Shown piece by piece: positions 5,505 to 21,314 of a stretch of 64,000 nt of DNA. Within the stretch, counting starts at the first letter, position 1. The number at the start of each line of letters is the position of its first letter. Location: positions 124,001 through 188,000 of IMG/VR virus record IMGVR_UViG_3300030503_000315. The stretch is one strand, 5' to 3'. The notes under the pieces are model-generated. The model ran no database searches and was not told the origin of the DNA. It saw only the letters and a program-made list of their open reading frames with translations. Position numbers and translations under genes: made by a program.

Positions 5505-6276
5505 TCTCCTCAGAGCTCGGAACTTCGCCGAGCAAACATTTGACCAACTTTACGCATGCGTGCATCTGATCGATGCGGCGCTGCACACTGGCGCGAGCAA
5601 ACAACATGTGGTAGATTTCATTGGCATCACTATTTCGCTCAGCCATGGTGATTCTCTTCGCCAGCTTGTGGTGATTAAGACCAAACAGAGCATTCGACTT
5701 CCACTTCTGATGCTCTGAAATGGATGAAGCATGGGGAACATACATCAACCATTCCAGCCTCTTAGCCTCACGATTCAGGTACCAGATGGCCTTGTTCAGA
5801 TCCTGCTCGGAATTTCCCTTGTCGCCCCGACGATAGATGTACTTGAAAGCGTTACCCGGGTTGAACTCCATCACCTCAGCGATATCTATACACTCAACCT
5901 CGGAAGGGTGATTGTTGTAATGCTTTGGGTGGTTCACCATCTCTTCGCTATCGAGAGCACGGCGTGCAGGGATCTCCATACTCATCATCGCATCCTTCGT
6001 TGCTTCATCTAACTGATGACATGTCCCGCACTGACCCCAGGTCAAACTCTGCAGGTCATTAGATTTCTGACAGACGATACAGTCTGCTTTCGCCTTTCCA
6101 AACCCATCGACCTCTGCTTCAGCCATCTTATCAATGGTGGTATTGAAGTCTCCTATTGCCTTGTCTACAACAACCTTCGCTTTCTTAGCCATACCAAGAG
6201 CCTGATCTACAAGCTGGTTGGCATACGCGAATGCTAGAGAAGGTTCTTCCTTTTTCTCTTTTCCATCTTCCATCAT
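5491..6276 (-). CDS. DUF3310-domain protein
   Basis: VNHPKHY...ECID...GNAFKY..R...K....QDL.KA.WYL signature. Confidence 0.85.
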   Translation of the reverse strand: MMEDGKEKKEEPSLAFAYANQLVDQALGMAKKAKVVVDKAIGDFNTTIDKMAEAEVDGFGKAKADCIVCQKSNDLQSLTWGQCGTCHQLDEATKDAMMSMEIPARRALDSEEMVNHPKHYNNHPSEVECIDIAEVMEFNPGNAFKYIYRRGDKGNSEQDLNKAIWYLNREAKRLEWLMYVPHASSISEHQKWKSNALFGLNHHKLAKRITMAERNSDANEIYHMLFARASVQRRIDQMHACVKLVKCLLGEVPSSEENEDE

Positions 6277-7472: not shown

Positions 7473-7736
7473 TTAGGTAGCGAGCTCTTTTTTGAGTCTC
7501 TTCTTAAGACTTCTACGTCCTATATTTACTACATCTACGGGTAGGACGGGGAGTCCGACACGCCTTGCATACTCATGGGATGGAATTGGGGTTTGTGCGA
7601 ACGTACAACCTCCGTGCAAACGATGTTGCCACATACAACTTCCCTTAGCTAAGGGACATCGCGAAACTGCCAATTGCTGTTGAATCACACCACAGAATGT
7701 TCCTCCTTCCTTGGGTAACTGGTCATCATGATCCAT
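7473..7736 (-). CDS. Small Cys-containing hypothetical protein
   Basis: 87 aa, four spaced Cys. Confidence 0.55.
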   Translation of the reverse strand: MDHDDQLPKEGGTFCGVIQQQLAVSRCPLAKGSCMWQHRLHGGCTFAQTPIPSHEYARRVGLPVLPVDVVNIGRRSLKKRLKKELAT

Positions 7737-8049
7737 CTTTTAAGTCCTTGGGTTTCATTGTTACTTTATAAGGCTTGCCAAGATCGTATCGAGAATTTTC
7801 TGTCTCCACCCTTACTGCATCCCCTTCTTCATTGTACCCAATAGCTACAACAAGACTTGTTCGGATCCACTCGCCCGAACGAATAGCCCAGTCTGGATAG
7901 TCATAGATATCGCCCATCACTACAAAGTCAAGACTGTTGTCCATGGGCTTATGGAATGTCCAATTCTCTATCCGGCCCTTATGGGGTTTCAGGTCTTGGG
8001 CTGAGTTTTGCGAGGAGTCGCCTTCCGTCTTCTGCGTTTCGTTGCTCAT
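7726..8049 (-). CDS. Hypothetical phage protein
   Basis: Start trimmed to MSNETQK; G.I.TS.VV...ETENSRY pattern typical of small phage proteins. Confidence 0.65.
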   Translation of the reverse strand: MSNETQKTEGDSSQNSAQDLKPHKGRIENWTFHKPMDNSLDFVVMGDIYDYPDWAIRSGEWIRTSLVVAIGYNEEGDAVRVETENSRYDLGKPYKVTMKPKDLKDGS

Positions 8050-11823: not shown

Positions 11824-14620
11824 TTATTCCTTATCCACCAAAGCAACTAGATCTATGTCGGGTTTATTTACTTCATGCCAAACTGCTTTGAGGATCTCAC
11901 TGGAGACGGCGTCCGGATGGTTAGGGTGATGGTCTACACCGCTCAGGATATACGTGATATCGTTGTTTTCATGTGCTTCGAACCAAAGCTGAACCAGAGG
12001 ATTATCTTTTTCCCAAAGACCATAGTGATTGCGGATGTGCATACCAACCGAATGATGGAACTGTCCCATCTTTTCAGCAGTATCAACTTCTTCGCTTCGG
12101 AGGAATTTGATATCATCCTCTTTGAGGTTTGCTACGAGTTCCTTAATGATCTCTTCTTTACTTAGGTACGACATTGCTAGCTCCTTGTTGGTTATCATAC
12201 TTGAAATGCGTGTCCCGCCAATCTTCACAAACAGATTCTACGTGATGCGCGCCATCGATACCTATGTAAGTTAGGTCATGACCTTTGTAGCAATACTGTC
12301 CATCATCGTTGCATCCAGAAATTACAGCAGCTATAAGCAAGAGAGTTATCACAAACAAAGTAGGGGCCCACGCGGGATAAGTGTTCTTCATGTTCGCCTC
12401 TAGTTACAAGTTTGAGTAAGCTTATTTAGCGCCAGAGCTATGAGGATGTTCATTCTTCAACTTCATGCCATCCTTCTGCCGGAGTGTGTTCAATCATTAC
12501 TGGCTTGTGACCCAAAGCTATCAACTCTTCAGCCGTCATCTCATACCAAGGCTTGCTGTTAATCCCGGGAATGGGAAGAGGCGATGATTCGATTTTCATG
12601 TCCAAAGGATCGTAGATAGGATTACCTTTGATGTCATGATCTACGGGATTCATTTCTTCTCCAGTTCATCTCTTATGAGGTTGAGGGCTAGCCGCTCGTA
12701 ACTTCCTTCCTCGGTCATGTCTTCAAGGTACCGTAACGCGTCATCAACGGAAGTAAAGTCAGGCCGTTTGCTGTCAGATGTATCCACTGGGATGCTGTAT
12801 CGGTTTCGGAGGGGATACTTTTTGGGATCGCTCCAAGAAGTAGAGCCGCACTTACGACAAGACCAACAATGAGTGCCACTGCCGGTATAAGAATCCGAGT
12901 ATTCAAACCAATCATGTTTGTCCTCGTCGCACGGAATGACAGGCATGTTAGTGACCCATGTTCTCTAGTTTAGCTAAGGCAGCGAGTCTTTCTCTTTCCC
13001 ACTCATCCCTAGCCTTGGTGATTTCTTCAATGAAGATGTTAAGATTGTAGATGGACATGTGGTCACCCATCATGTCAAGGAAATTCTGTGTAAACTCTCG
13101 TGCATCTTTTGCTGAGATATCTATATCCTGTTCCGCAGCTTCCTCACTTCTCTGTAGACCGAACCCAGCTTCAGAGTGATGCTCATAGATGATGCGAAAA
13201 CGATTCCACGGGTTAAGATACAACGTTTGCTCAGGTTGGTCTGGGTTGCCCGGAAGCCACGTTCCCCAATCAGGATGTACCTCTTTATGATACTCAGCGT
13301 GCCTAGCCATCGACATTGCTGCGAGCTCAAGTTTGATCTTCATTTTGGAAACTCCTTAATTCTGCATTAACGTTCTCGATACTACCATACTTCTTCACAA
13401 TACGATCATGCTCAATCTTAACGAGTTCTCTACGATTCTTCCTCTCTTCGACGGAGAGATTAGGATAGAGATAACGATCCTCTGCAAGCCTCTGGTAATA
13501 GAGATAGATATGTTCGTATGGGTTTCTGATTTTGTATTGCCTAAGAGCCTCGTCGATTTCTTCATCCGATGGCTCGGGTATTTCCTGAACTACCTTCCTA
13601 CCACAGGTCTCGCAGGATGAGACCTTCACTCGGGAAAGTCCGACATCGGACGATTCAAATCCTCTGGATGAATCTGACGTTCTCTATCCAACTGTTCGAT
13701 GGATTTCTTCGCCAAACTTAATCCTTTCTTGATTCCTTCTACTATCACCTTACTGTCAACATCGGCAACAAGATCGTGGAGCTCAGAGTCAACAAATCTC
13801 GCTATGTCAGCATCTATATTTGTAGATGAGATATGAGATTGGTCAACGGGAGAGGATATGTCAACCACGTTTGGATCTTTATCAGCTGCGCATGTCACGG
13901 TAAAACTTTTGCCACACATAAAGTTCTGACACGTCGAGGCCCACGGTGCATTTCCTGTTCCACATACAGGACATTTCCATCCAGTCTGTACCGGTTGTGG
14001 TGCAGGTTCACATCCCTGGAATGGTGCGCACATCCCGGGCGTCGGACACTCAGACATAGTCTTTCTGCAGATCATCATATTCTTACCTCCTGGTGGTCTG
14101 GAGTATTCTAACTCCAAAAAGATACCATGTTGTTACCTGAGCGTATCCGTAGAACTCTCTCGGTCTACCTGGCAGTTCAACCTGGTTCCAGGTTTTGGAA
14201 ATCATCTGGACCTCACACGTAATCTTCGAAGTCAGGCGGAAAGAAAAGGACAGGATCGTCTTCCGGATCACCAGAAAATGGAATGCCTTGGAATTTCTTC
14301 GTAAAGAAACGCCCTTCCTTACCACAACGTTTGAGCAATTTCGTTTCCATCCAACTTGCCGAACGTTGGATGGAACATTCAGTTAGGTAGTCAGAGTGGT
14401 GTTCTCTGTATTTCGTCTTCCCATCTACAAGATCTATGTAGGAAGATTTCTCTATCCTTCTATGCTCCATGGTTACCGCGTACGCACAGGTATCCGGCTT
14501 CCGACCATGAACAGTCATTGCACCTTGTATATGATGGACGCAATCTTTGCACAACGGTATGTTGTTATTTACCATATCATTCTCCACAGAACCCGAAGGA
14601 ACGTTCGACCACAGAGTCAT
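11824..14620 (-). other. Cluster of ~9 small hypothetical genes, some with CxxC motifs
   Basis: Abutting ORFs 11824-~12174, 12158-12391 (lipoprotein-like ISGC), 12450-12653, 12650-12946, 12948-13343, 13327-13629, 13626-~14078, 14213-~14575. Confidence 0.6.
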
Positions 14621-15815
14621 CTACATGCTCGAAACGAGGGATCCACAGACCATCTCGCTTCACGTATTCCCGCCACTCTGAGACAGGACGCAACCAGTCC
14701 GAAAGTTTCGACACTGACTCGTAGTCAACGTAGGATACACCCGTAGCTTCCATCGTGCTGATCTTCGTCACACGATAGAACCCACCATTGTAGTGACGGT
14801 AGTATTCGTTGACCTCAGGCATGGGAGACAGTTCAGGAAACTTCGGCTGTTCCTTTTTAGAATCTAACCCGAGCAAAGATTCGAGGAACTCTGCAAGTTC
14901 GCTACAATCTTTGCCGGTGAAGAATGGTTTACCCGCATCAAGATACTCATGTGCGCGATGAAGATCGTTAATCCATTCGGTCGCATACTGTCTCTTTTCC
15001 TCCTCATCCGCCCACCACATGTTGCCCGGCGCATGTAGAAGGGGTTCTACGGCTAGACGTCTCTTCTCTACCTGTTCTTGAGTGTCGGCCAGCTGACATT
15101 GAAGCGAAAGATCCGACGCAGACTCACGAATCAGGCCATAGGTAGGGTCTGCATCTTCCAAAGGATCACCATAGACTACTTCCGGAAGAATCTCTTCAGG
15201 ATCGTCAATGCTCCAACTCTGCACTTCCTGCCACCAAGGCTTCTGCTCAATTCTTGTCCCCAATGTTTCTTCCAGGCTAGGATTAACTCCGAAAACAGGA
15301 ACCTCTTTTGTGTCTACAGGTTTCTCCTCTTGTTCTATCAGGAAATCTATCAGGAAATCTTTCTTTAGTCCAGACGCTGCCTGGTGTTTGTTGTCCAACC
15401 GAAACCACACCCCGGTAAATTTCCTATGTACATGAAAGTGTCCGACTGCAGGGGCAGGTACACTCAATGGTTTGGACTGTCTGCGAAACCCCGGAAATTC
15501 CATCTGAGCTAACTGACGAAATGCCGAGGCTTCACCTGATATCGTAGAGTCGTATGGCAGAACATGAAGGAGGATACATTCATTAAAAATTCCCTCAGTT
15601 TCCAGCTCACGTTTCAGGTGATTCATTGCCGCGTTGTAGGTGTTCCACAGGAACTGGTTGTAAGGATGAACGGGGTAGAAAATCAGGTAACCTTTCTGTG
15701 ATGGCAACCATCGTGGATCTGAACCTAGGACATCGTGGAGAATTCGAGCCTCATCCACCTGGTAAACCTTCTTCCAGATACGTCCTTCCCGACCTTCCTC
15801 AATCGTAAAATGCAT
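14577..15815 (-). CDS. Multidomain protein with C-terminal DUF1653-like domain
   Basis: True start MHFTIEEG at 15815 (GGAGGGAG SD); C-terminal YRHYNGGFYRV...VDYES...WLRP.SEW. Confidence 0.75.
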   Translation of the reverse strand: MHFTIEEGREGRIWKKVYQVDEARILHDVLGSDPRWLPSQKGYLIFYPVHPYNQFLWNTYNAAMNHLKRELETEGIFNECILLHVLPYDSTISGEASAFRQLAQMEFPGFRRQSKPLSVPAPAVGHFHVHRKFTGVWFRLDNKHQAASGLKKDFLIDFLIEQEEKPVDTKEVPVFGVNPSLEETLGTRIEQKPWWQEVQSWSIDDPEEILPEVVYGDPLEDADPTYGLIRESASDLSLQCQLADTQEQVEKRRLAVEPLLHAPGNMWWADEEEKRQYATEWINDLHRAHEYLDAGKPFFTGKDCSELAEFLESLLGLDSKKEQPKFPELSPMPEVNEYYRHYNGGFYRVTKISTMEATGVSYVDYESVSKLSDWLRPVSEWREYVKRDGLWIPRFEHVDDSVVERSFGFCGE

Positions 15816-15859
15816 AACTCCCTCCTCTGGTTGTTGACCTCCATATTTACTGTTTCTAG

Positions 15860-16073
15860 GTACTGTCAACATCCACTGTAAGTACTTCCTGTACCCCAGG
15901 ATATAACGTAACAATATACTATATGTGACAGTACCTAAATGTCGACAAGTACCCAAGAGTACTGTCAACATCCACTGTAAGTACCACCACCTACTTACAG
16001 TAACCACTGACAGTACATCCTCAAACGTAGGAAATGGTAAATATGAGGTACTTACAACAAATACTGACAGTAC
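15860..16073. repeat. Iteron-like direct and inverted repeats; candidate replication origin at strand switch
   Basis: 26 bp direct repeat GTACTGTCAACATCCACTGTAAGTAC at 15860-15885 and 15959-15984; inverted bipartite copies at 15992-16016 and 16048-16073; extra TGACAGTAC at 15926. Confidence 0.85.
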
Positions 16074-16104
16074 CAAAACGGAGTTTAAGTTGAACAGATA
16101 TGCA

Positions 16105-17430
16105 ATGTTGGATGGGGCAGCAATAGGTACCGAATATGACCCAGCATTAGACTCTGGTCGTGTGGTTTGCAAGAATCCAAAAGCCCTATGGAAAGCGATC
16201 GAGGAATCACGGGAAATCACAATCATAGCCAAGAAAGCTGATGAACTTGTTGCTCGAATGGATCCATGGGATAACGAGAGTGGTCGGGGTTGTCGTGATC
16301 TACCAATCAAACGAACGATCTACCTCGATCTAAAGATGAGTGCGGATAAGAAAGGTAAGAAAAGGTGGCATTTCAACATTCGTACGAATCCTGCGTCGGT
16401 CTTCACTGGGGATAACACATTTGGATCCTTGATGGTTGTTCGGCAAATCAGGGAAGTGTTCAACTTCATCCTGGATTACTTCGAGGACATGGGGGTAAAT
16501 GTCGAGGTGATGAGGAAGCAGGTACAACGAGGGGACATAGTTCTGTCTTCCATAGCATTTGCTGTCTACTCTGACAAGGTGAAAAACTCTGATATAGTTC
16601 GGCGACTGCTGGACAAGTGGTACTTCATGTACGAGACAAGGGTGGAGTACGAAGGACGGTATGTGACTCTGTTGGAAGCTCTTGGTTTGTCCAGGTCATC
16701 TGGGGAACAGTTCGCAGATTCCTTGGGGCTGAATATCTTTGGGTATAACCTGGCGGCAAAGGCGAAGTCGGCTACCGACAGAGGGCACAAGCTGATGCAC
16801 CTTTGCCTGTACGATAAGGCGGCAGAACTTCGTGCCAAGGACAACCTGGCGGATAATGATGATGAACTAGTGGATGATCTTGAACGCAGGATACGGTTTG
16901 ACCTGACGATCTCTCGCTATTACTTCAACACCGCATGGAACATGAAGCACGTAACATTGCGTAACCTCTACATGAAGATGAAGGAAAAGGGGTCGTGGGA
17001 AAATGTTGTGCTGGAACTAATGAACTATGCCATTGATCGTACCTGCCTGCAGTACATGGCGGTGGCTCCGAATGTCTATGCGGCGGAACATTCGGAGATA
17101 CTTGATCTGTGGACCAGGCAGATAGAGCAGAGGAAAGGTAGAGGGTCAGGGAAGTGGGACCCGAAGTTGATTCGATGGGCGGAAGAACTGGGCGTCAAGT
17201 TGAAGGTGAGTCCAATAGCACATCTGATAATGCACCAAGGTAGGCTTGGTCTGCATATGAATCGTATGGATAAGGCGAAGGAATGGTTGTCGTCACCCGA
17301 AGGCGCAAAGAAGTACGGCCTGTCGGTAACCAAGGCGGCGGAGCTTGAGCGTAAGCAGAGCAATTTCGCGAGAGCAGTGTCAAAGCTTGAGCTAGACTTC
17401 TCCAGTCCAACTTACGTGAGGTTAGGATGA
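16105..17430 (+). CDS. Gene II/X-family (Rep_trans-like) rolling-circle replication initiator-like protein
   Basis: Start trimmed to MLDG; TNPASVFTGDNTFGS resembles the NPxK..xGHNxFGS motif; LYDKAAE (catalytic YxK) and RIRFDL. Confidence 0.7.
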   Translation: MLDGAAIGTEYDPALDSGRVVCKNPKALWKAIEESREITIIAKKADELVARMDPWDNESGRGCRDLPIKRTIYLDLKMSADKKGKKRWHFNIRTNPASVFTGDNTFGSLMVVRQIREVFNFILDYFEDMGVNVEVMRKQVQRGDIVLSSIAFAVYSDKVKNSDIVRRLLDKWYFMYETRVEYEGRYVTLLEALGLSRSSGEQFADSLGLNIFGYNLAAKAKSATDRGHKLMHLCLYDKAAELRAKDNLADNDDELVDDLERRIRFDLTISRYYFNTAWNMKHVTLRNLYMKMKEKGSWENVVLELMNYAIDRTCLQYMAVAPNVYAAEHSEILDLWTRQIEQRKGRGSGKWDPKLIRWAEELGVKLKVSPIAHLIMHQGRLGLHMNRMDKAKEWLSSPEGAKKYGLSVTKAAELERKQSNFARAVSKLELDFSSPTYVRLG

Positions 17431-18131
17431 AGGACAATGAAAAATCTTACGTCTACATGTATCGGGTAGATGGCGTACCTATCTATGTTGGAATAGGGAC
17501 CGAAGATAATGGGAACTTTGTACGCGCGCGGAGTCTGGTAGGACATAAGGGTATTAAACCTGACGAATTCGATAAGGTTCAGATAGATGTGATCCAGCGT
17601 AACATTTCTAGAACACAAGCTAGAACATTTGAATCCGTACTTATCCAGGTTCTGGGTCAGGATTTCAGGTTAAGGAATAAGAAGATCTCAGACCGCAAAG
17701 TAAATGTTCGCACCATAGTGGCCGACCCAAATTCGAAAAAGAGAATTGTAAGAGGACAGGTTGCGGATGAGATGATTCGGAAAGAATTAGTCACAGAACA
17801 ATTACAACTATTCTCGAGCGACAGCGGACTAGCTTCTCATAATATATTTTTAGAACCTAGCAAGACTTCTTCGGGTAATTTGGTAGCAGCCTTGTGTACT
17901 GGGTATGATCCGGAATTGGATTCACTCTTGACAAAGTTTCATAAGTGGTGGAGATCCGTCGGGTTCGACCCGATGTATGAGAAAGTAATGATTATAGTAC
18001 CATGGGAATCTCAAGCCGAAAATTTTCGGAAAGCTACCAAAGATATTTGTTTCCATGGATCAGATAGGCCTGCGGTTCTGATTACTTCAGTTGAGCGTTG
18101 GGCAGAGTTTATGTTGGGGCACAAGAAGTGA
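17427..18131 (+). CDS. GIY-YIG nuclease-domain protein
   Basis: YVYMY...IYVGIG, downstream Arg, Glu (ARTFE) and Asn (LRN). Confidence 0.7.
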   Translation: MKDNEKSYVYMYRVDGVPIYVGIGTEDNGNFVRARSLVGHKGIKPDEFDKVQIDVIQRNISRTQARTFESVLIQVLGQDFRLRNKKISDRKVNVRTIVADPNSKKRIVRGQVADEMIRKELVTEQLQLFSSDSGLASHNIFLEPSKTSSGNLVAALCTGYDPELDSLLTKFHKWWRSVGFDPMYEKVMIIVPWESQAENFRKATKDICFHGSDRPAVLITSVERWAEFMLGHKK

Positions 18132-18180
18132 CGTTAGGACAAGTAAATATGAACGATCCCTAAACCTAGAGGAGCAACGA

Positions 18181-18558
18181 ATGACGATACTTTGCAGGAT
18201 ACGGAAGGACAAACAAAACAACTGGTGGGACCTTGATTCGGTTCTCATAAGTGTGGATGGCATCCTGGGCATGCCCTTCGCCCGCGGATTCAAAGATCAG
18301 TTTCATGCAGTGTCGTGGTTAAGTCATCATGTAACGAGATGCTTAGGCATCGATTGCTCACACCTGTTTAATGGATACTCCGTACCTTACGATGATCTGG
18401 ACGTTGAGGTATCATACACTTTTGGTGTAGCTTATCCAACGGTGAGTTTCCATGCGTTCAATATTAGCCTGTCAACCTTTGAAGTGATCTGTGACGAGTC
18501 ACAGACTAAGGAAGACCTGGATCTTCTACAACTCATGAAAGACATTTGTCAGGGATAA
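18181..18558 (+). CDS. DLLQLM-tag family protein 1
   Basis: Start trimmed to MTILCR (AGGAG SD); ends DLDLLQLMKDICQG. Confidence 0.75.
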   Translation: MTILCRIRKDKQNNWWDLDSVLISVDGILGMPFARGFKDQFHAVSWLSHHVTRCLGIDCSHLFNGYSVPYDDLDVEVSYTFGVAYPTVSFHAFNISLSTFEVICDESQTKEDLDLLQLMKDICQG

Positions 18559-18561
18559 CCA

Positions 18562-18948
18562 ATGAATCAATGTAGTGGATGCGTCTACCAGGCCAGAAAG
18601 CAGAATGACCTGTGGCATCTTTTCTATGAGATGTTATACACCGAAAAGTCATCTGGTCTTCGTCATCTTATGAGAGGTCAGTTCACAAGTAGGGATGAAG
18701 CTGAGCGTCATCTTGTTGAAACCTTTGGTCGTTGTACAGACCAACTCGAGGCCGACAGGGTGTCTTGTCTTGTCCTGCTTATTCCACGAGAACAGGAATG
18801 GGATCTTCAAGTGAAATGGGATCCAGTTCCTACCACCAGCATGTTGTGTTATCCAAATATTGCAAACCTAAAGTACAAGATCACCAAACATGCTGCACAA
18901 CCTGATCTTCTGCAACTCATGCACGATATCCTTGGAGATAACCAATGA
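18562..18948 (+). CDS. DLLQLM-tag family protein 2
   Basis: Ends PDLLQLMHDILGDNQ. Confidence 0.75.
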   Translation: MNQCSGCVYQARKQNDLWHLFYEMLYTEKSSGLRHLMRGQFTSRDEAERHLVETFGRCTDQLEADRVSCLVLLIPREQEWDLQVKWDPVPTTSMLCYPNIANLKYKITKHAAQPDLLQLMHDILGDNQ

Positions 18949-19307
18949 CGATCCTTGTTCATTTTCGAAAATCTACGAACCCGCAAAAGTGGAGCGTGAG
19001 TACAACTCTGGTGTCTCGTGATGGCATCCTCGGTATGCCCGAACGCGGTGCCTTCGCGACGCAAGCCGGAGCCTACGAGTGGCTTATAAGTGAGATAGCC
19101 GTGGCGACCAATTATGACGTAAAACAGGTTTTTGAAGAGGCACGTGCCGAGGTGCGTATCGATATCGAAGAGGAGTTCGACATCGTAATTTCTGTACCAA
19201 ACGGGCACAGTACCCTTCCTATAGTGGAGTTCAAAAGACTCAACATGGTGGGAGATGTAACCACCGTGGACCTCCTGCAGTTGATGAACGACATCTGCTC
19301 TAACTGA
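18945..19307 (+). CDS. DLLQLM-tag family protein 3
   Basis: Ends VDLLQLMNDICSN; shares DGILGMP with protein 1. Confidence 0.75.
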   Translation: MTILVHFRKSTNPQKWSVSTTLVSRDGILGMPERGAFATQAGAYEWLISEIAVATNYDVKQVFEEARAEVRIDIEEEFDIVISVPNGHSTLPIVEFKRLNMVGDVTTVDLLQLMNDICSN

Positions 19308-19315
19308 GGTATAGA

Positions 19316-19675
19316 ATGGCAATCAGAAAATGTGAGTGGAGTATAATGCGAGTAGGGAACATCGCTAGCTCTGGGACTTACTCGGGTTATGAAATCTATG
19401 ATGACGCTACACAGAAACTCTTAGATACAGCTCCTCGTGGATTTCTTTCGACGACTTTGCGCCGCTTGATGTTATGTATTGGATATCCTAGAGATCAGAT
19501 AGACGCCCTTGTGGATCCCTTGGTTGTTCAGTTGATGAAAGATGAAACAACACCTCTGTACCTTCACTTCGAAGCAGACCTTGAGATGTGCTGCCGACTT
19601 CTGGATGTACCTTACAAGGGTCCGGTGGTTCCCACTCCAGACCTCCTGCAAATCATGAATGATATCTGTTCCTAA
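19316..19675 (+). CDS. DLLQLM-tag family protein 4
   Basis: Ends PDLLQIMNDICS. Confidence 0.75.
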   Translation: MAIRKCEWSIMRVGNIASSGTYSGYEIYDDATQKLLDTAPRGFLSTTLRRLMLCIGYPRDQIDALVDPLVVQLMKDETTPLYLHFEADLEMCCRLLDVPYKGPVVPTPDLLQIMNDICS

Positions 19676-19685
19676 GGACTAGCAT

Positions 19686-20084
19686 ATGGATCTCATAGGA
19701 TGTATTTTTAAAGTTAGGATGTTACGAAACGCAGCCCATTGGGAAATTCTTAATCAGTACATCTATGAGGATGGATCTCTAACTCGAGAGACTTACTTTA
19801 GTTCGAGTTTAGGCTCAAGGTTACAGGCGGATTCATACCTCGCTGGACATGTCCGAAGCTGTTTTGACGACATTCGCTACTCCATGGCGCTCTCTACTAT
19901 AGATAGAGTAGGGAAAGATCTTGAGTACGACTTTATCCTGAACTGGGATCCTGTACCTCCCATCTTTCCAGGTGGTAATGCCGCATTGAAGAATCTGAGC
20001 ATGAGAGTTGAAGTTCCTGGTGATGATGGACAGCAAACAACACCTGATCTTTTATCCATCATGAATGATGTTTGTAGAGGATGA
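19686..20084 (+). CDS. DLLQLM-tag family protein 5
   Basis: Ends PDLLSIMNDVCRG; shares WDPVP with protein 2. Confidence 0.75.
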   Translation: MDLIGCIFKVRMLRNAAHWEILNQYIYEDGSLTRETYFSSSLGSRLQADSYLAGHVRSCFDDIRYSMALSTIDRVGKDLEYDFILNWDPVPPIFPGGNAALKNLSMRVEVPGDDGQQTTPDLLSIMNDVCRG

Positions 20085-20476
20085 AGATGAAATACGTTAC
20101 ATGCACGTTCAAGGTATTGAAGAACCCAGATGTATCTAGTGCGTCAAAGTGGGTAGTCAAGTACATGTACAAGCAGGAATTCGGTCTTGCTACAGTTCCG
20201 CAAACATTTGGTACTTATCTCACAAGAGGTGAGGCTATGGATAGTCTTGTCTATCATATAGGATCTGTCCTTGGTGATTTGTCGAACCACTACTATGATC
20301 TACCTCCGGATGTTGAATTCAGGATTGACATCAATTTCGACCCTATCGATCCGGACATTCATCCTCTGAATCATACTTCCCTCACAAATGTTCGACTAGA
20401 TCTAACGTGGAAAGATGACAAGAGCCTGGATGGTTCGGCCTTGCTTGATCTCATGTACGACATCTTGGGAAACTGA
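20081..20476 (+). CDS. DLLQLM-tag family protein 6
   Basis: Ends ALLDLMYDILGN. Confidence 0.75.
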   Translation: MKMKYVTCTFKVLKNPDVSSASKWVVKYMYKQEFGLATVPQTFGTYLTRGEAMDSLVYHIGSVLGDLSNHYYDLPPDVEFRIDINFDPIDPDIHPLNHTSLTNVRLDLTWKDDKSLDGSALLDLMYDILGN

Positions 20477-20477
20477 C

Positions 20478-20903
20478 ATGCTAGTGACCAATATGCAGTA
20501 TCTTGTTCAACCTAAGAAATCTGGTATCTGCGATTTTCATGTCGATGCCAAGTGGGTGGATACGAATGGAGTATCCCATCTGTATGATTCTTTCTATCCG
20601 ATTGACCGGGAAAACCTTTTGGTAACCCTTGCATGGTTGTCGCACCACAAGATCGGCAGCAACTGTGGGGCTTCCGATTACGCATGGCGTCAACTCTTTG
20701 ATAACTATGTGCAGCCCAAGGACAATTTCTATACACACGAGTGTTTGATAACCTTGGGTTGGGGTCTCAAAGCTTACGACGAATCGTCTGTCACTCCTAC
20801 CCATGTGCGTATCGATGAAGCTACGTGGACCAAAGTTGGTATCCATGGGGGAAGCTTAAGAACAAATCTCCTCGACCTGGCCAAAGATTTGTGTCAGTTC
20901 TAG
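20478..20903 (+). CDS. DLLQLM-tag family protein 7
   Basis: Start trimmed to MLVTN; ends NLLDLAKDLCQF. Confidence 0.7.
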   Translation: MLVTNMQYLVQPKKSGICDFHVDAKWVDTNGVSHLYDSFYPIDRENLLVTLAWLSHHKIGSNCGASDYAWRQLFDNYVQPKDNFYTHECLITLGWGLKAYDESSVTPTHVRIDEATWTKVGIHGGSLRTNLLDLAKDLCQF

Positions 20904-20933
20904 GAAAGTAAATATTGATGTCGATCTTAGGAG

Positions 20934-21314
20934 GTGCCCGCGGTGAAAGATAACTGTTTCAACATTTACTACAACTCAAGGCTTGATACTTGGGAACTGT
21001 ACGAGTCCAGCGGCCATGCAATCTTGGGTTGGAGCAGGTCTCAAGATCAGGTCGTGTGGTTTGCAAAGAATGCTGCTCAACGAAATAACGGTGGCGAACC
21101 CGTAGAGTTCGATATCGAACGCTATGGCGCCGTGGTTTATATGTCTCCCAAGCCCACCTCGGCTATTTGGCAAGAAATTGTAGACCGGGAAGATGCCGAG
21201 TGGAAGAGGAAGGTTGACGAGATGATAGCGGGTTATGTTCCTGGATCTCTACTGGATCCTACAAAGGTCTGGTCTACTGAGCCAGACCTTTTGCAGTTGA
21301 TGCATGATCTCTAA
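20934..21314 (+). CDS. DLLQLM-tag family protein 8
   Basis: Ends PDLLQLMHDL. Confidence 0.75.
   Translation: MPAVKDNCFNIYYNSRLDTWELYESSGHAILGWSRSQDQVVWFAKNAAQRNNGGEPVEFDIERYGAVVYMSPKPTSAIWQEIVDREDAEWKRKVDEMIAGYVPGSLLDPTKVWSTEPDLLQLMHDL

Follow-up and report, generated by a model that had tools for sequence, protein, structure and literature searches.

A gene II-like putative nicking initiator and a unique repeat cluster at the main strand switch of an uncultured jumbo phage, a candidate replication origin

The locus lies in a window of 64,000 nucleotides (positions 124,001 to 188,000 of the IMG/VR record IMGVR_UViG_3300030503_000315), part of the 215-kb genome (G000) of an uncultured tailed phage from peat, an RSL1-like jumbo myovirus. 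Here the two gene arms of the genome diverge. A 274-bp intergenic region (15816-16089) separates the first gene of the leftward arm from a gene encoding a 446 aa protein related to the gene II nicking initiator of filamentous phages. The intergenic region carries four bipartite sites, a fifth half-site, an AT-rich core and two divergent promoter-like boxes (Table 1). The phage encodes its own polymerase, primase, helicase and topoisomerase. Relatives infect Ralstonia, Burkholderia and Achromobacter.

Table 1 Features of the strand switch and its initiator-like gene, in window coordinates.
Position	Strand	Feature	Observations
14577..15815	-	First gene of the leftward arm, 412 aa, DUF1653 at the C-terminus	ATG at 15815, GGAGG upstream; left edge of the intergenic region, not part of the proposed mechanism; the left neighbour in locus L005 also carries DUF1653
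15842..15856	-	Leftward promoter-like box, GAAACAGTAAATATG on the minus strand	GTAAATA at 15850-15844; mirror image of 16031-16045 (15-nt inverted pair, 87% complementary)
15860..15885	+	Bipartite site 1, GTACTGTCA-N8-TGTAAGTAC	Directly upstream of the leftward box; the one bipartite site recurring in all three closest relatives (L005, L006, L002), with the same position next to the leftward box in L005
15901..15925	+	AT-rich core (80% A+T) containing TAACAATAT...ATATG	Candidate nick or unwinding site; overlaps the -10 box of a sigma-70-like leftward promoter (TCGACA-16-TATAGT, 15945..15918)
15926..15934	-	Fifth half-site, GTACTGTCA on the minus strand	Abuts the AT core; forms a perfect 12-bp inverted repeat with 15857-15868
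15959..16016	.	Bipartite sites 2 (15959-15984, +) and 3 (15991-16016, -) in inverted orientation, 8-nt spacer	Cruciform-capable; site 2 is identical to site 1 and 99 bp away, site 3 has 1 mismatch and lies 15 bp upstream of the rightward box
16031..16045	+	Rightward promoter-like box, GAAATGGTAAATATG, for the initiator gene	GTAAATA at 16037-16043
16048..16073	-	Bipartite site 4	Immediately downstream of the rightward box, a repressor-type position; presumed autoregulation site
16090..17430	+	Gene II / Rep_trans-superfamily initiator-like gene, 446 aa	TTG start, GGAG at 16080-16083; in the model, residues 1-~285 form the catalytic crescent (D8, N96, N100, Y160, Y241, K243, E246, R269, D271) and residues ~290-446 a helical domain of unassigned family

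The repeats were far above chance. The four bipartite sites compare with 0.02 expected matches, and none of 100 shuffles reached four. The half-site occurred five times in the window, against 0.42 expected. In the whole 215-kb genome the 9-mer was found only twice more, and the bipartite form nowhere else. Each 26-mer is itself a pseudo-palindrome, with GTACTKWCA half-sites. The central inverted pair was predicted to fold as a DNA hairpin of -14 kcal/mol (z = -6.4, with 0 of 200 shuffles as good). GTAAATA occurred 46 times in the genome, and 44 copies were co-oriented with their gene arm. An Rfam scan of 14000-18500 gave no hits.

The observation made in an earlier note from the sequence alone, namely four copies of a bipartite site with a cruciform-capable central pair, an AT-rich spacer and divergent GTAAATA boxes immediately upstream of a protein with gene II/X-family motifs, was confirmed in all its elements. 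One correction concerns the gene start. The gene starts at the TTG at 16090, the same residue at which homologues begin, and not at the GTG at 15925 of the mechanically called open reading frame.

The protein had a hit to Pfam PF05144 (gene II N-terminal domain, Phage_CRI) over residues 79-280, with 29.8 bits against a curated gathering cut-off of 21.7. A six-frame search of the genome gave the same single hit, and 54 of 75 relatives also hit this family. The protein is a divergent member. With the whole-protein NCBIfam model TIGR01629 (rep_II_X) it scored 17.4 bits (E = 0.0016), below the cut-off of 29, and would not be named by PGAP. Neither the gene X domain (PF05155) nor Rep_trans (PF02486) was hit at E <= 1, and a search of PDB sequences with the family profile found no relevant chain. 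We looked by eye for an internal in-frame start for a gene X-like product, around M295/M297, and found no convincing ribosome-binding site.

A structure model built on 75 sequences was confident (pLDDT 93.2, pTM 0.91), whereas a first model from 6 sequences had reached a pLDDT of only 39. The model shows the Rep_trans/gene II crescent fold, a ten-strand sheet with pseudo-twofold, TBP-like topology. The best solved-structure matches were the Rep_trans initiators RepDE/RepD (Foldseek probability 1.0) and RepSTK1 (0.5-0.8), with VIA Z scores of 8.8, 8.7 and 7.9 for 4cwe, 4cwc and 4cij. They were followed by TBPs at Z about 7, the same pattern as published for RepD. Among Swiss-Prot models, the pT181-family Reps and NicK were the top matches. 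An inovirus G2P protein ranked second in BFVD, and clusters of the “phage/plasmid replication protein, II/X family” came top in the ESM Atlas. A lack of structural similarity to Rep_trans/gpII had been set beforehand as grounds for rejecting the assignment, and such similarity was found.

The catalytic residues were invariant or nearly so. D8 was present in 72 of 72 non-gap sequences, and Y241, K243, R269 and Asn100 in 75 of 75. Position 246 was E in 60 and Q in 12, and position 271 was D in 65 and E in 10. D8, Y241, K243, E/Q246, R269 and D/E271 match the Rep_trans motifs N' (D), III (YxKxxE) and IV (RxE), and sit on the expected elements of the model: strand 1, the end of a strand followed by a helix, and the next strand. 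Aligning the family profile to M13 gpII placed Tyr-197, Lys-199 and Glu-202 on Y241, K243 and E246. Tyr-197 is the residue that forms the covalent link (PMC5405960). Motif I (RxD), with the third acidic metal ligand of Rep_trans, and motif II were not recognized in the sequence. The candidate position 156 was Glu in 40 of 75 relatives, but Ala in the window protein and its clade.

To see whether the arrangement recurs, we examined nine independent loci from relatives (L002, L003, L005, L007 and L041 to L045). In eight of them, all but L044 and including two other contigs of about 220 kb, the gene was again the first one at a divergent strand switch, behind 180-530 bp of intergenic DNA. In all of these eight but L003, this DNA carried clear lineage-specific repeats, for example eight tandem 17-bp iterons in L043. 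The repeat sequence changed with the divergence of the protein while the layout was kept. L005 and L045 had the same repeat - box - repeat layout with other repeat sequences, and the GTAAATA box was found in L002, L003, L005, L006 and L045. In a complete 218.9-kb relative (G001), its own, different repeat was likewise confined to its intergenic region. The AT core was conserved on the strand of the gene, 151-212 bp upstream of the start, in the window, L002, L005, L006 and L007, with a variant in L003. It is conserved in loci whose proteins are down to 41% identical to that of the window. A half-site followed ATATG in the relatives too. The stem 15857-15868/15926-15937 could present the AT core in the loop of a large hairpin, as in M13, but this idea was rejected because the stem is not conserved in L005. 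The junction was contiguous in independent peat assemblies.

Megablast and tblastn searches of 50,697 phage records, using the window DNA, the window protein, two distant family members and the left neighbour as queries, found no relative. A family-profile search of the closest cultured relatives (phiRSL1, BcepSaruman, BCSR5 and Motura) also found no family member, although without a positive control such an empty answer proves little. The module thus appears not to be universal in this phage group. Crude ORF calling in the GC-rich phiRSL1 genome was too noisy to show what occupies its divergence point.

The cumulative GC-skew minimum fell at the locus in both G000 and G001. The skew support proposed by the earlier note is thus real in position, but it follows gene orientation and is not independent of it. 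We compared co-oriented and counter-oriented genes to find a replication component. The G000 result (p about 1e-8) is untrustworthy, because most of the counter-oriented ORFs are probably shadow ORFs. The reliable blocks gave a mixed signal in G000 and none in G001, where reliable counter-oriented genes kept a coding-strand skew.

We propose, with moderate confidence, that the intergenic region and the gene form an origin-plus-initiator module, with a nick-initiated origin whose initiator also regulates its own promoter. The mechanism is inferred from the family. The protein would be a divergent but catalytically intact member of the gene II branch of the Rep_trans superfamily, probably binding the pseudo-palindromic 26-bp sites as a dimer. 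A molecule bound at the half-site next to the AT core would cut one strand there and become covalently linked through Tyr241 to the 5' end. The free 3'-OH would be extended by the phage's own polymerase, helicase and primase, giving sigma (rolling-circle type) replication and concatemers for packaging. Sites 3 and 4 bracket the promoter of the gene and would let the protein limit its own synthesis. Our analysis establishes the family, the fold at the level of a confident model, the motif conservation, the uniqueness of the repeats, and the conserved position and layout in relatives. Binding and nicking themselves, which protein binds the repeats, the nick site and strand, the mode and direction of replication, and origin function are inferred. 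Unidirectional nick-primed replication does not by itself explain the two symmetric arms.

The interpretation in the earlier note, a nicking initiator or origin-binding protein, domesticated, defining the origin of a large dsDNA phage, or else a captured small replicon, was supported as to family, catalytic tyrosine and position at the strand switch of a large phage, and of its alternatives the comparative data favor the nicking initiator. An unlikely rival is that the repeats are operators of a separate transcription factor controlling the divergent early promoters, while the nickase acts elsewhere or on another substrate, for example in strand-specific genome nicks, recombination priming or competition with other phages. 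The pseudo-palindromic sites upstream or downstream of promoter-like boxes and the orientation-dependent skew would fit this reading, and the conservation of the AT core could be promoter conservation, as it overlaps a sigma-70-like -10 box. L005 and L006, whose proteins are 66-70% identical to that of the window, have a second, unrelated palindrome (CTCYTATAGT..ACTATAAGAG) where the window has sites 3, 4 and the fifth half-site, so at least some repeats may belong to another regulator. However, the repeats change with the protein while the layout is kept, initiators of this superfamily bind repeats next to their nick site, with the origin just upstream of the gene in M13, and no candidate regulator gene was conserved beside the locus.

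Doubtful, too, is a domesticated, catalytically dead protein which marks or melts the origin without nicking, with priming by the phage primase and bidirectional theta replication. The unrecognized third metal ligand, the Ala at position 156, the two symmetric arms, the skew and the presence of a primase would agree with it. The conservation of the catalytic residues is, however, not expected after loss of catalysis, and position 156 varies across the whole family, not only in this clade. Least likely is a recently captured small replicon or selfish element, such as an inovirus or plasmid remnant, or a homing cassette together with the neighbouring GIY-YIG-like gene that follows, sitting at the switch by chance. 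The family is best known from filamentous phages and small plasmids, and the closest cultured relatives showed no member, but the position is the same in eight independent large-phage loci whose proteins are 21-66% identical to that of the window, and is held in phage contigs with only 21-48% identity. We found no inovirus structural or assembly genes nearby, the local G + C content (0.46-0.47) was close to that of the genome (0.472), and the downstream neighbour was not conserved with the gene.

Replication origins and initiators of jumbo phages are almost entirely unknown. Such a module has not been described for them in the literature we could search, and two broad reviews mention no rolling-circle or nick-based initiation. 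The locus gives a concrete, cheaply testable candidate, one short fragment and one protein, and a positional marker, because a gene II-like gene placed first at the main divergent switch recurs in many metagenomic large-phage contigs. If confirmed, it would extend the Rep_trans/gene II enzyme class from replicons of a few kilobases to 200-kb genomes with their own replisome, provide an anchor for annotating origins in uncultured phages, and supply a compact origin-plus-initiator pair for vectors derived from such phages. More tentatively, gene II-type covalent nickases, so far tied to small ssDNA phages, small plasmids and ICEs, may be the origin-specific initiators of a broad, so far uncultured set of large tailed dsDNA phages of up to about 220 kb, which would be the largest replicons started by this enzyme class. 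In some of them, paired nicks on opposite strands could launch bidirectional replication matching the two gene arms, as L002 has two divergently oriented copies of the AT core plus half-site.

Among known systems, the gene II protein and (+)-strand origin of the Ff filamentous phages (M13/f1/fd) share the Pfam family, the catalytic tyrosine in the same Y-x-K-x-x-E context, and an aligned N-P...G-x-N-x-x-G block. In both, the origin (here a candidate) lies in intergenic DNA 100-250 bp upstream of the gene on the same strand, with inverted and direct repeats, protein-binding in Ff phages, and an AT-rich part. The replicon here is a 215-kb dsDNA myovirus with its own replisome, and not a 6.4-kb ssDNA phage using host Rep helicase and Pol III. 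Sequence similarity is marginal (the family profile against M13 gpII gave only 14 bits), the gene X C-terminal domain was not found, and the repeats and candidate nick core are unrelated in sequence. The Rep_trans initiators of pT181-family plasmids (RepC/RepD; structures 4CWC, 4CWE, 4CIJ) share the crescent sheet, a Tyr at the end of a strand followed by a helix carrying K and E/Q, an Asp on strand 1 and an acidic residue on the following strand, as for the metal ligands, and a separate helical C-terminal domain, which in RepD binds a palindromic specificity site beside the nick hairpin. Identity is about 10% and TM only 0.3-0.4, and the plasmid proteins recruit host PcrA, while this phage encodes its own helicases. 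NicK, the Rep_trans relaxase of ICEBs1, shows that this enzyme type can start rolling-circle replication of a larger dsDNA element, but it works in conjugative transfer of an integrated element, and no conjugation genes are present here. Protein A and the ori of phage P2/186 are a precedent for a tailed dsDNA phage that starts replication with a site-specific tyrosine nickase, though with an unrelated (HUH) fold, a 33-kb genome and an ori inside the A gene.

The window (bases 124001-188000) lies in a 215,315-bp IMG/VR virus record, linear and estimated to be 91% complete. The large proteins of this genome (G000) identified a contractile-tailed jumbo phage, with a tail sheath, a large terminase, a DNA polymerase, a 1598-aa helicase, a topoisomerase II, an SbcC-like nuclease and a primase. 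The terminase was 65% identical to that of Ralstonia phage phiRSL1, and 46-58% identical to those of Burkholderia and Achromobacter jumbo phages. Near-identical DNA was present in about twenty peat metagenome runs. The junction studied here was contiguous in independent assemblies, with two single-base differences in 3 kb and none in the repeats.

Every element listed in the earlier note was found in the sequence. The bipartite site GTACTGTCA-N8-TGTAAGTAC had four matches, against 0.02 expected by shuffling. Genome-wide, the 9-mer of the half-site occurred only twice more and the bipartite form never. Each 26-mer is itself an imperfect palindrome of GTACTKWCA half-sites, which suggests a dimeric binder. 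Sites 2 and 3 can extrude a cruciform (z = -6.4). The GTAAATA boxes lie inside a 15-nt inverted pair. GTAAATA, usually preceded by A(T/C)A, occurred 46 times in the genome, and 44 copies were co-oriented with the local gene arm. The same held in a related genome (G001), and the box is therefore plausibly a phage promoter element. The element, (A/T)A(T/C)AGTAAATA, resembles the T4 late promoter TATAAATA, and it also flanks the initiator gene in distant relatives (loci L003, L005 and L045).

Features of the putative origin region, its flanks and the equivalent regions of related loci
Feature	Location	Strand	Remarks
Small Cys-rich protein	window 13626-14117	-	weak RanBP-type zinc-ribbon match (E = 6e-4, below the cut-off)
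First gene of the leftward arm	window 14577-15815	-	C-terminal DUF1653 domain (E = 2e-10)
Leftward GTAAATA box	window 15850-15844		faces outward
Bipartite site 1	window 15860	+	identical to site 2
AT-rich core	window 15901-15925		80% A+T
Fifth half-site	window 15926-15934	-
Bipartite site 2	window 15959	+	99 bp from site 1
Bipartite site 3	window 15991-16016	-
Rightward GTAAATA box	window 16037-16043		faces outward
Bipartite site 4	window 16048-16073	-
Start of the gene II-like gene	window 16090		TTG, behind GGAG
GIY-YIG-like gene	window 17427-18131	+	234 aa, overlaps the initiator's stop codon
Eight tandem paralogous small genes	window 18091-21314	+	about 120-160 aa each
Promoter-like element, examples	window 16031-16045, 18143, 20908, 26522
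Second palindrome family	L005:1537-1560, 1604-1627; L006:92-115		CTCYTATAGT-N2-4-ACTATAAGAG
Iteron array plus palindromes	L043:7526-7696 and 7697-7909		8 tandem 17-bp units plus six TGTACGCATG palindromes
Two copies of the AT core plus half-site	L002:5657-5700 and 5820-5854		divergently oriented, 21-nt perfect inverted repeat, about 120-155 bp apart

Homologues of the gene II-like protein begin at the same residue as the TTG start. The protein matched Pfam PF05144 (replication-associated protein G2P, N-terminal) with 29.8 bits against a cut-off of 21.7, while the match to NCBIfam rep_II_X was below the cut-off of that model. A word-based search found only 5 relatives, and an exhaustive profile search found 73. 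Of the 75 aligned sequences, 54 hit PF05144. With this alignment AlphaFold gave a model with a pLDDT of 93.2 and a pTM of 0.91. The best solved-structure matches of the model were the Rep_trans initiators RepDE/RepD and RepSTK1 (Foldseek probability 1.0 for RepDE/RepD and 0.5-0.8 for RepSTK1; VIA Z 8.8, 8.7 and 7.9), followed by TATA-binding proteins, which is the pattern published for the Rep_trans fold (PMC4797284). In agreement were the matches to Swiss-Prot models of pT181-family Reps and of NicK, to an inovirus G2P protein ranked second in BFVD behind an unnamed viral protein, and to “II/X family” clusters of the ESM Atlas (TM 0.64-0.66 by the hit).

Across the 75 sequences, the invariant or nearly invariant residues were D8, N96, N100, P101, N109, G112, A158, Y160, Y241, K243, E/Q246, R267, R269 and D/E271. 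These reproduce the Rep_trans motifs N' (Asp on strand 1), III (YxKxxE) and IV (RxE), and in the model they sit on the corresponding elements. The M13 gene II Tyr-197, which links covalently to the nicked strand (PMC5405960), aligned with Y241. The one gap was the third acidic metal ligand: no RxD motif was recognized, and position 156 is Glu in 40 of the 75 sequences, but Ala here. A natural variant from another sample (P0001, 98% identical) lacks 9 residues (LRAKDNLAD, residues about 247-255) just after the catalytic YxKxxE helix. On balance, judging from sequence and model, the enzyme looks catalytically intact.

Genes run leftward from about 139.8 kb down to about 29 kb, and rightward from 140.1 kb through the record end to about 29 kb. 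The cumulative GC skew had its global minimum at 140 kb, that is at window position about 16,000, and its maximum near 30 kb. The sign fits bidirectional replication from this point, but it equally fits a purine-rich coding strand. Reliable counter-oriented gene blocks gave a mixed signal in this genome and none in G001. The skew proposed as a check in the earlier note therefore agrees in position, but it is not independent evidence.

On both sides of the switch there are many small genes of unknown function, typical of early genes, among them the one for the Cys-rich protein. The first gene of the leftward arm shares its DUF1653 domain with the left neighbor in L005, and tblastn found no homologue of it in deposited phage genomes. 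The gene overlapping the end of the initiator gene had no Pfam, PHROG or NCBIfam hit, but the N-terminus of its product (YVYMYRVDGVPIYVGIG) looks like a GIY-YIG nuclease motif. The L003 neighborhood contains a LEM-3 GIY-YIG gene. The eight tandem paralogs lie directly downstream of the initiator locus, and each ends in a conserved C-terminal motif, (P)DLLQLMxDIC, 0-5 residues before the stop. Pfam found nothing in the four that were scanned. The locus L004 has a similar run of 120-170-aa genes after its initiator gene.

We obtained nine independent loci of relatives (L002, L003, L005, L007, L041, L042, L043, L045 and L044), with proteins from 66% down to about 21% identical to that of the window. 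They include a complete 218,861-bp genome with terminal repeats (G001, in which L007 and L027 are the same locus) and a 223,561-bp contig (L041). A tenth contig, L006, with a 70% identical protein, is too short to show its left flank. In eight of the nine loci the gene is the first one at a divergent strand switch, behind 180-530 bp of non-coding DNA. In the ninth, L044, it lies 1.9 kb inside the arm. In G001 the locus again coincides with the cumulative skew minimum.

Most of these intergenic regions carry their own repeats, with only weak ones in L003. The three closest relatives have the same GTACTGWCA...TGTRAGTAC sites, and G001 has ACACATAGTTTAAC-type repeats, which occur nowhere else in its 219 kb. 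L041 has TTACACCC...GGGTGTAA palindromes, and L045 has direct repeats bracketing the GTAAATA box. L043, a 39-kb phage-like contig, has a textbook iteron array and palindromes upstream of its gene II-like gene, with a Toprim primase three genes downstream and a type IB topoisomerase upstream. The layout repeat, rightward box, repeat and gene recurs in the window, L005 and L045. An AT-rich core, TAACAATAT-N3-5-ATATG followed at once by a half-site, is conserved on the gene's strand 151-212 bp upstream of the start. This holds in all loci with proteins at least 41% identical to that of the window, with a variant in L003. L002 has a second, inverted copy of this core, and the pair could be a symmetric origin.

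Of the readings in the earlier note, a nicking initiator defining the replication origin of a large phage is the one that these data favor, while domestication in the sense of inactivity was not indicated and a captured small replicon was not supported. What the analysis itself shows is the family, the predicted fold, the conserved motifs, the uniqueness of the repeats and the conserved position and layout in relatives. The binding, the nicking, the origin function and the mechanism that follows are inferred. In this mechanism, dimers of the protein would occupy the 26-bp sites, and a subunit on the fifth half-site would place the catalytic crescent on the adjoining AT core, where one strand would be cut and Tyr241 would become attached to the 5' end. 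The 3'-OH would prime the phage replisome, giving sigma-type replication and concatemers, and occupancy of sites 3 and 4 around the rightward box would limit further synthesis of the protein. We consider this reading somewhat more likely than not. It is weakened by the unresolved third metal ligand, by the overlap of the AT core with a sigma-70-like leftward promoter, TCGACA-16-TATAGT, and by the nearest cultured relatives, in which a family-profile search showed no family member. It is also weakened by L005 and L006, which carry the second palindrome type (CTCYTATAGT..ACTATAAGAG) at positions where the window has GTACTGTCA-type sites, hinting at a second DNA-binding specificity in the origin region of close relatives, and another regulator may therefore share the region.

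It is possible, although unlikely, that a separate transcription factor binds the repeats and that the nickase acts elsewhere. Less likely still is a catalytically dead origin binder, with theta replication primed by the primase. A recently captured small replicon or selfish cassette is very unlikely, as the conserved position across deeply diverged large phages, the absence of inovirus genes and the normal composition all argue against it.

In the searchable literature, we found no mention of this family as the candidate initiator of jumbo or other large tailed phages, and BLAST detected no relative in 50,697 deposited phage genomes. ESM Atlas clusters of the family are partly labeled Uroviricota, so the sequences are in databases but not interpreted. 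The enzyme family itself and the logic of an origin beside its rep gene are well known. A cis-region whose architecture is kept while its repeats change with the adjacent, putatively DNA-binding enzyme is what an origin-plus-initiator module looks like. It mirrors M13, where the (+) origin lies 100-240 bp upstream of gene II.
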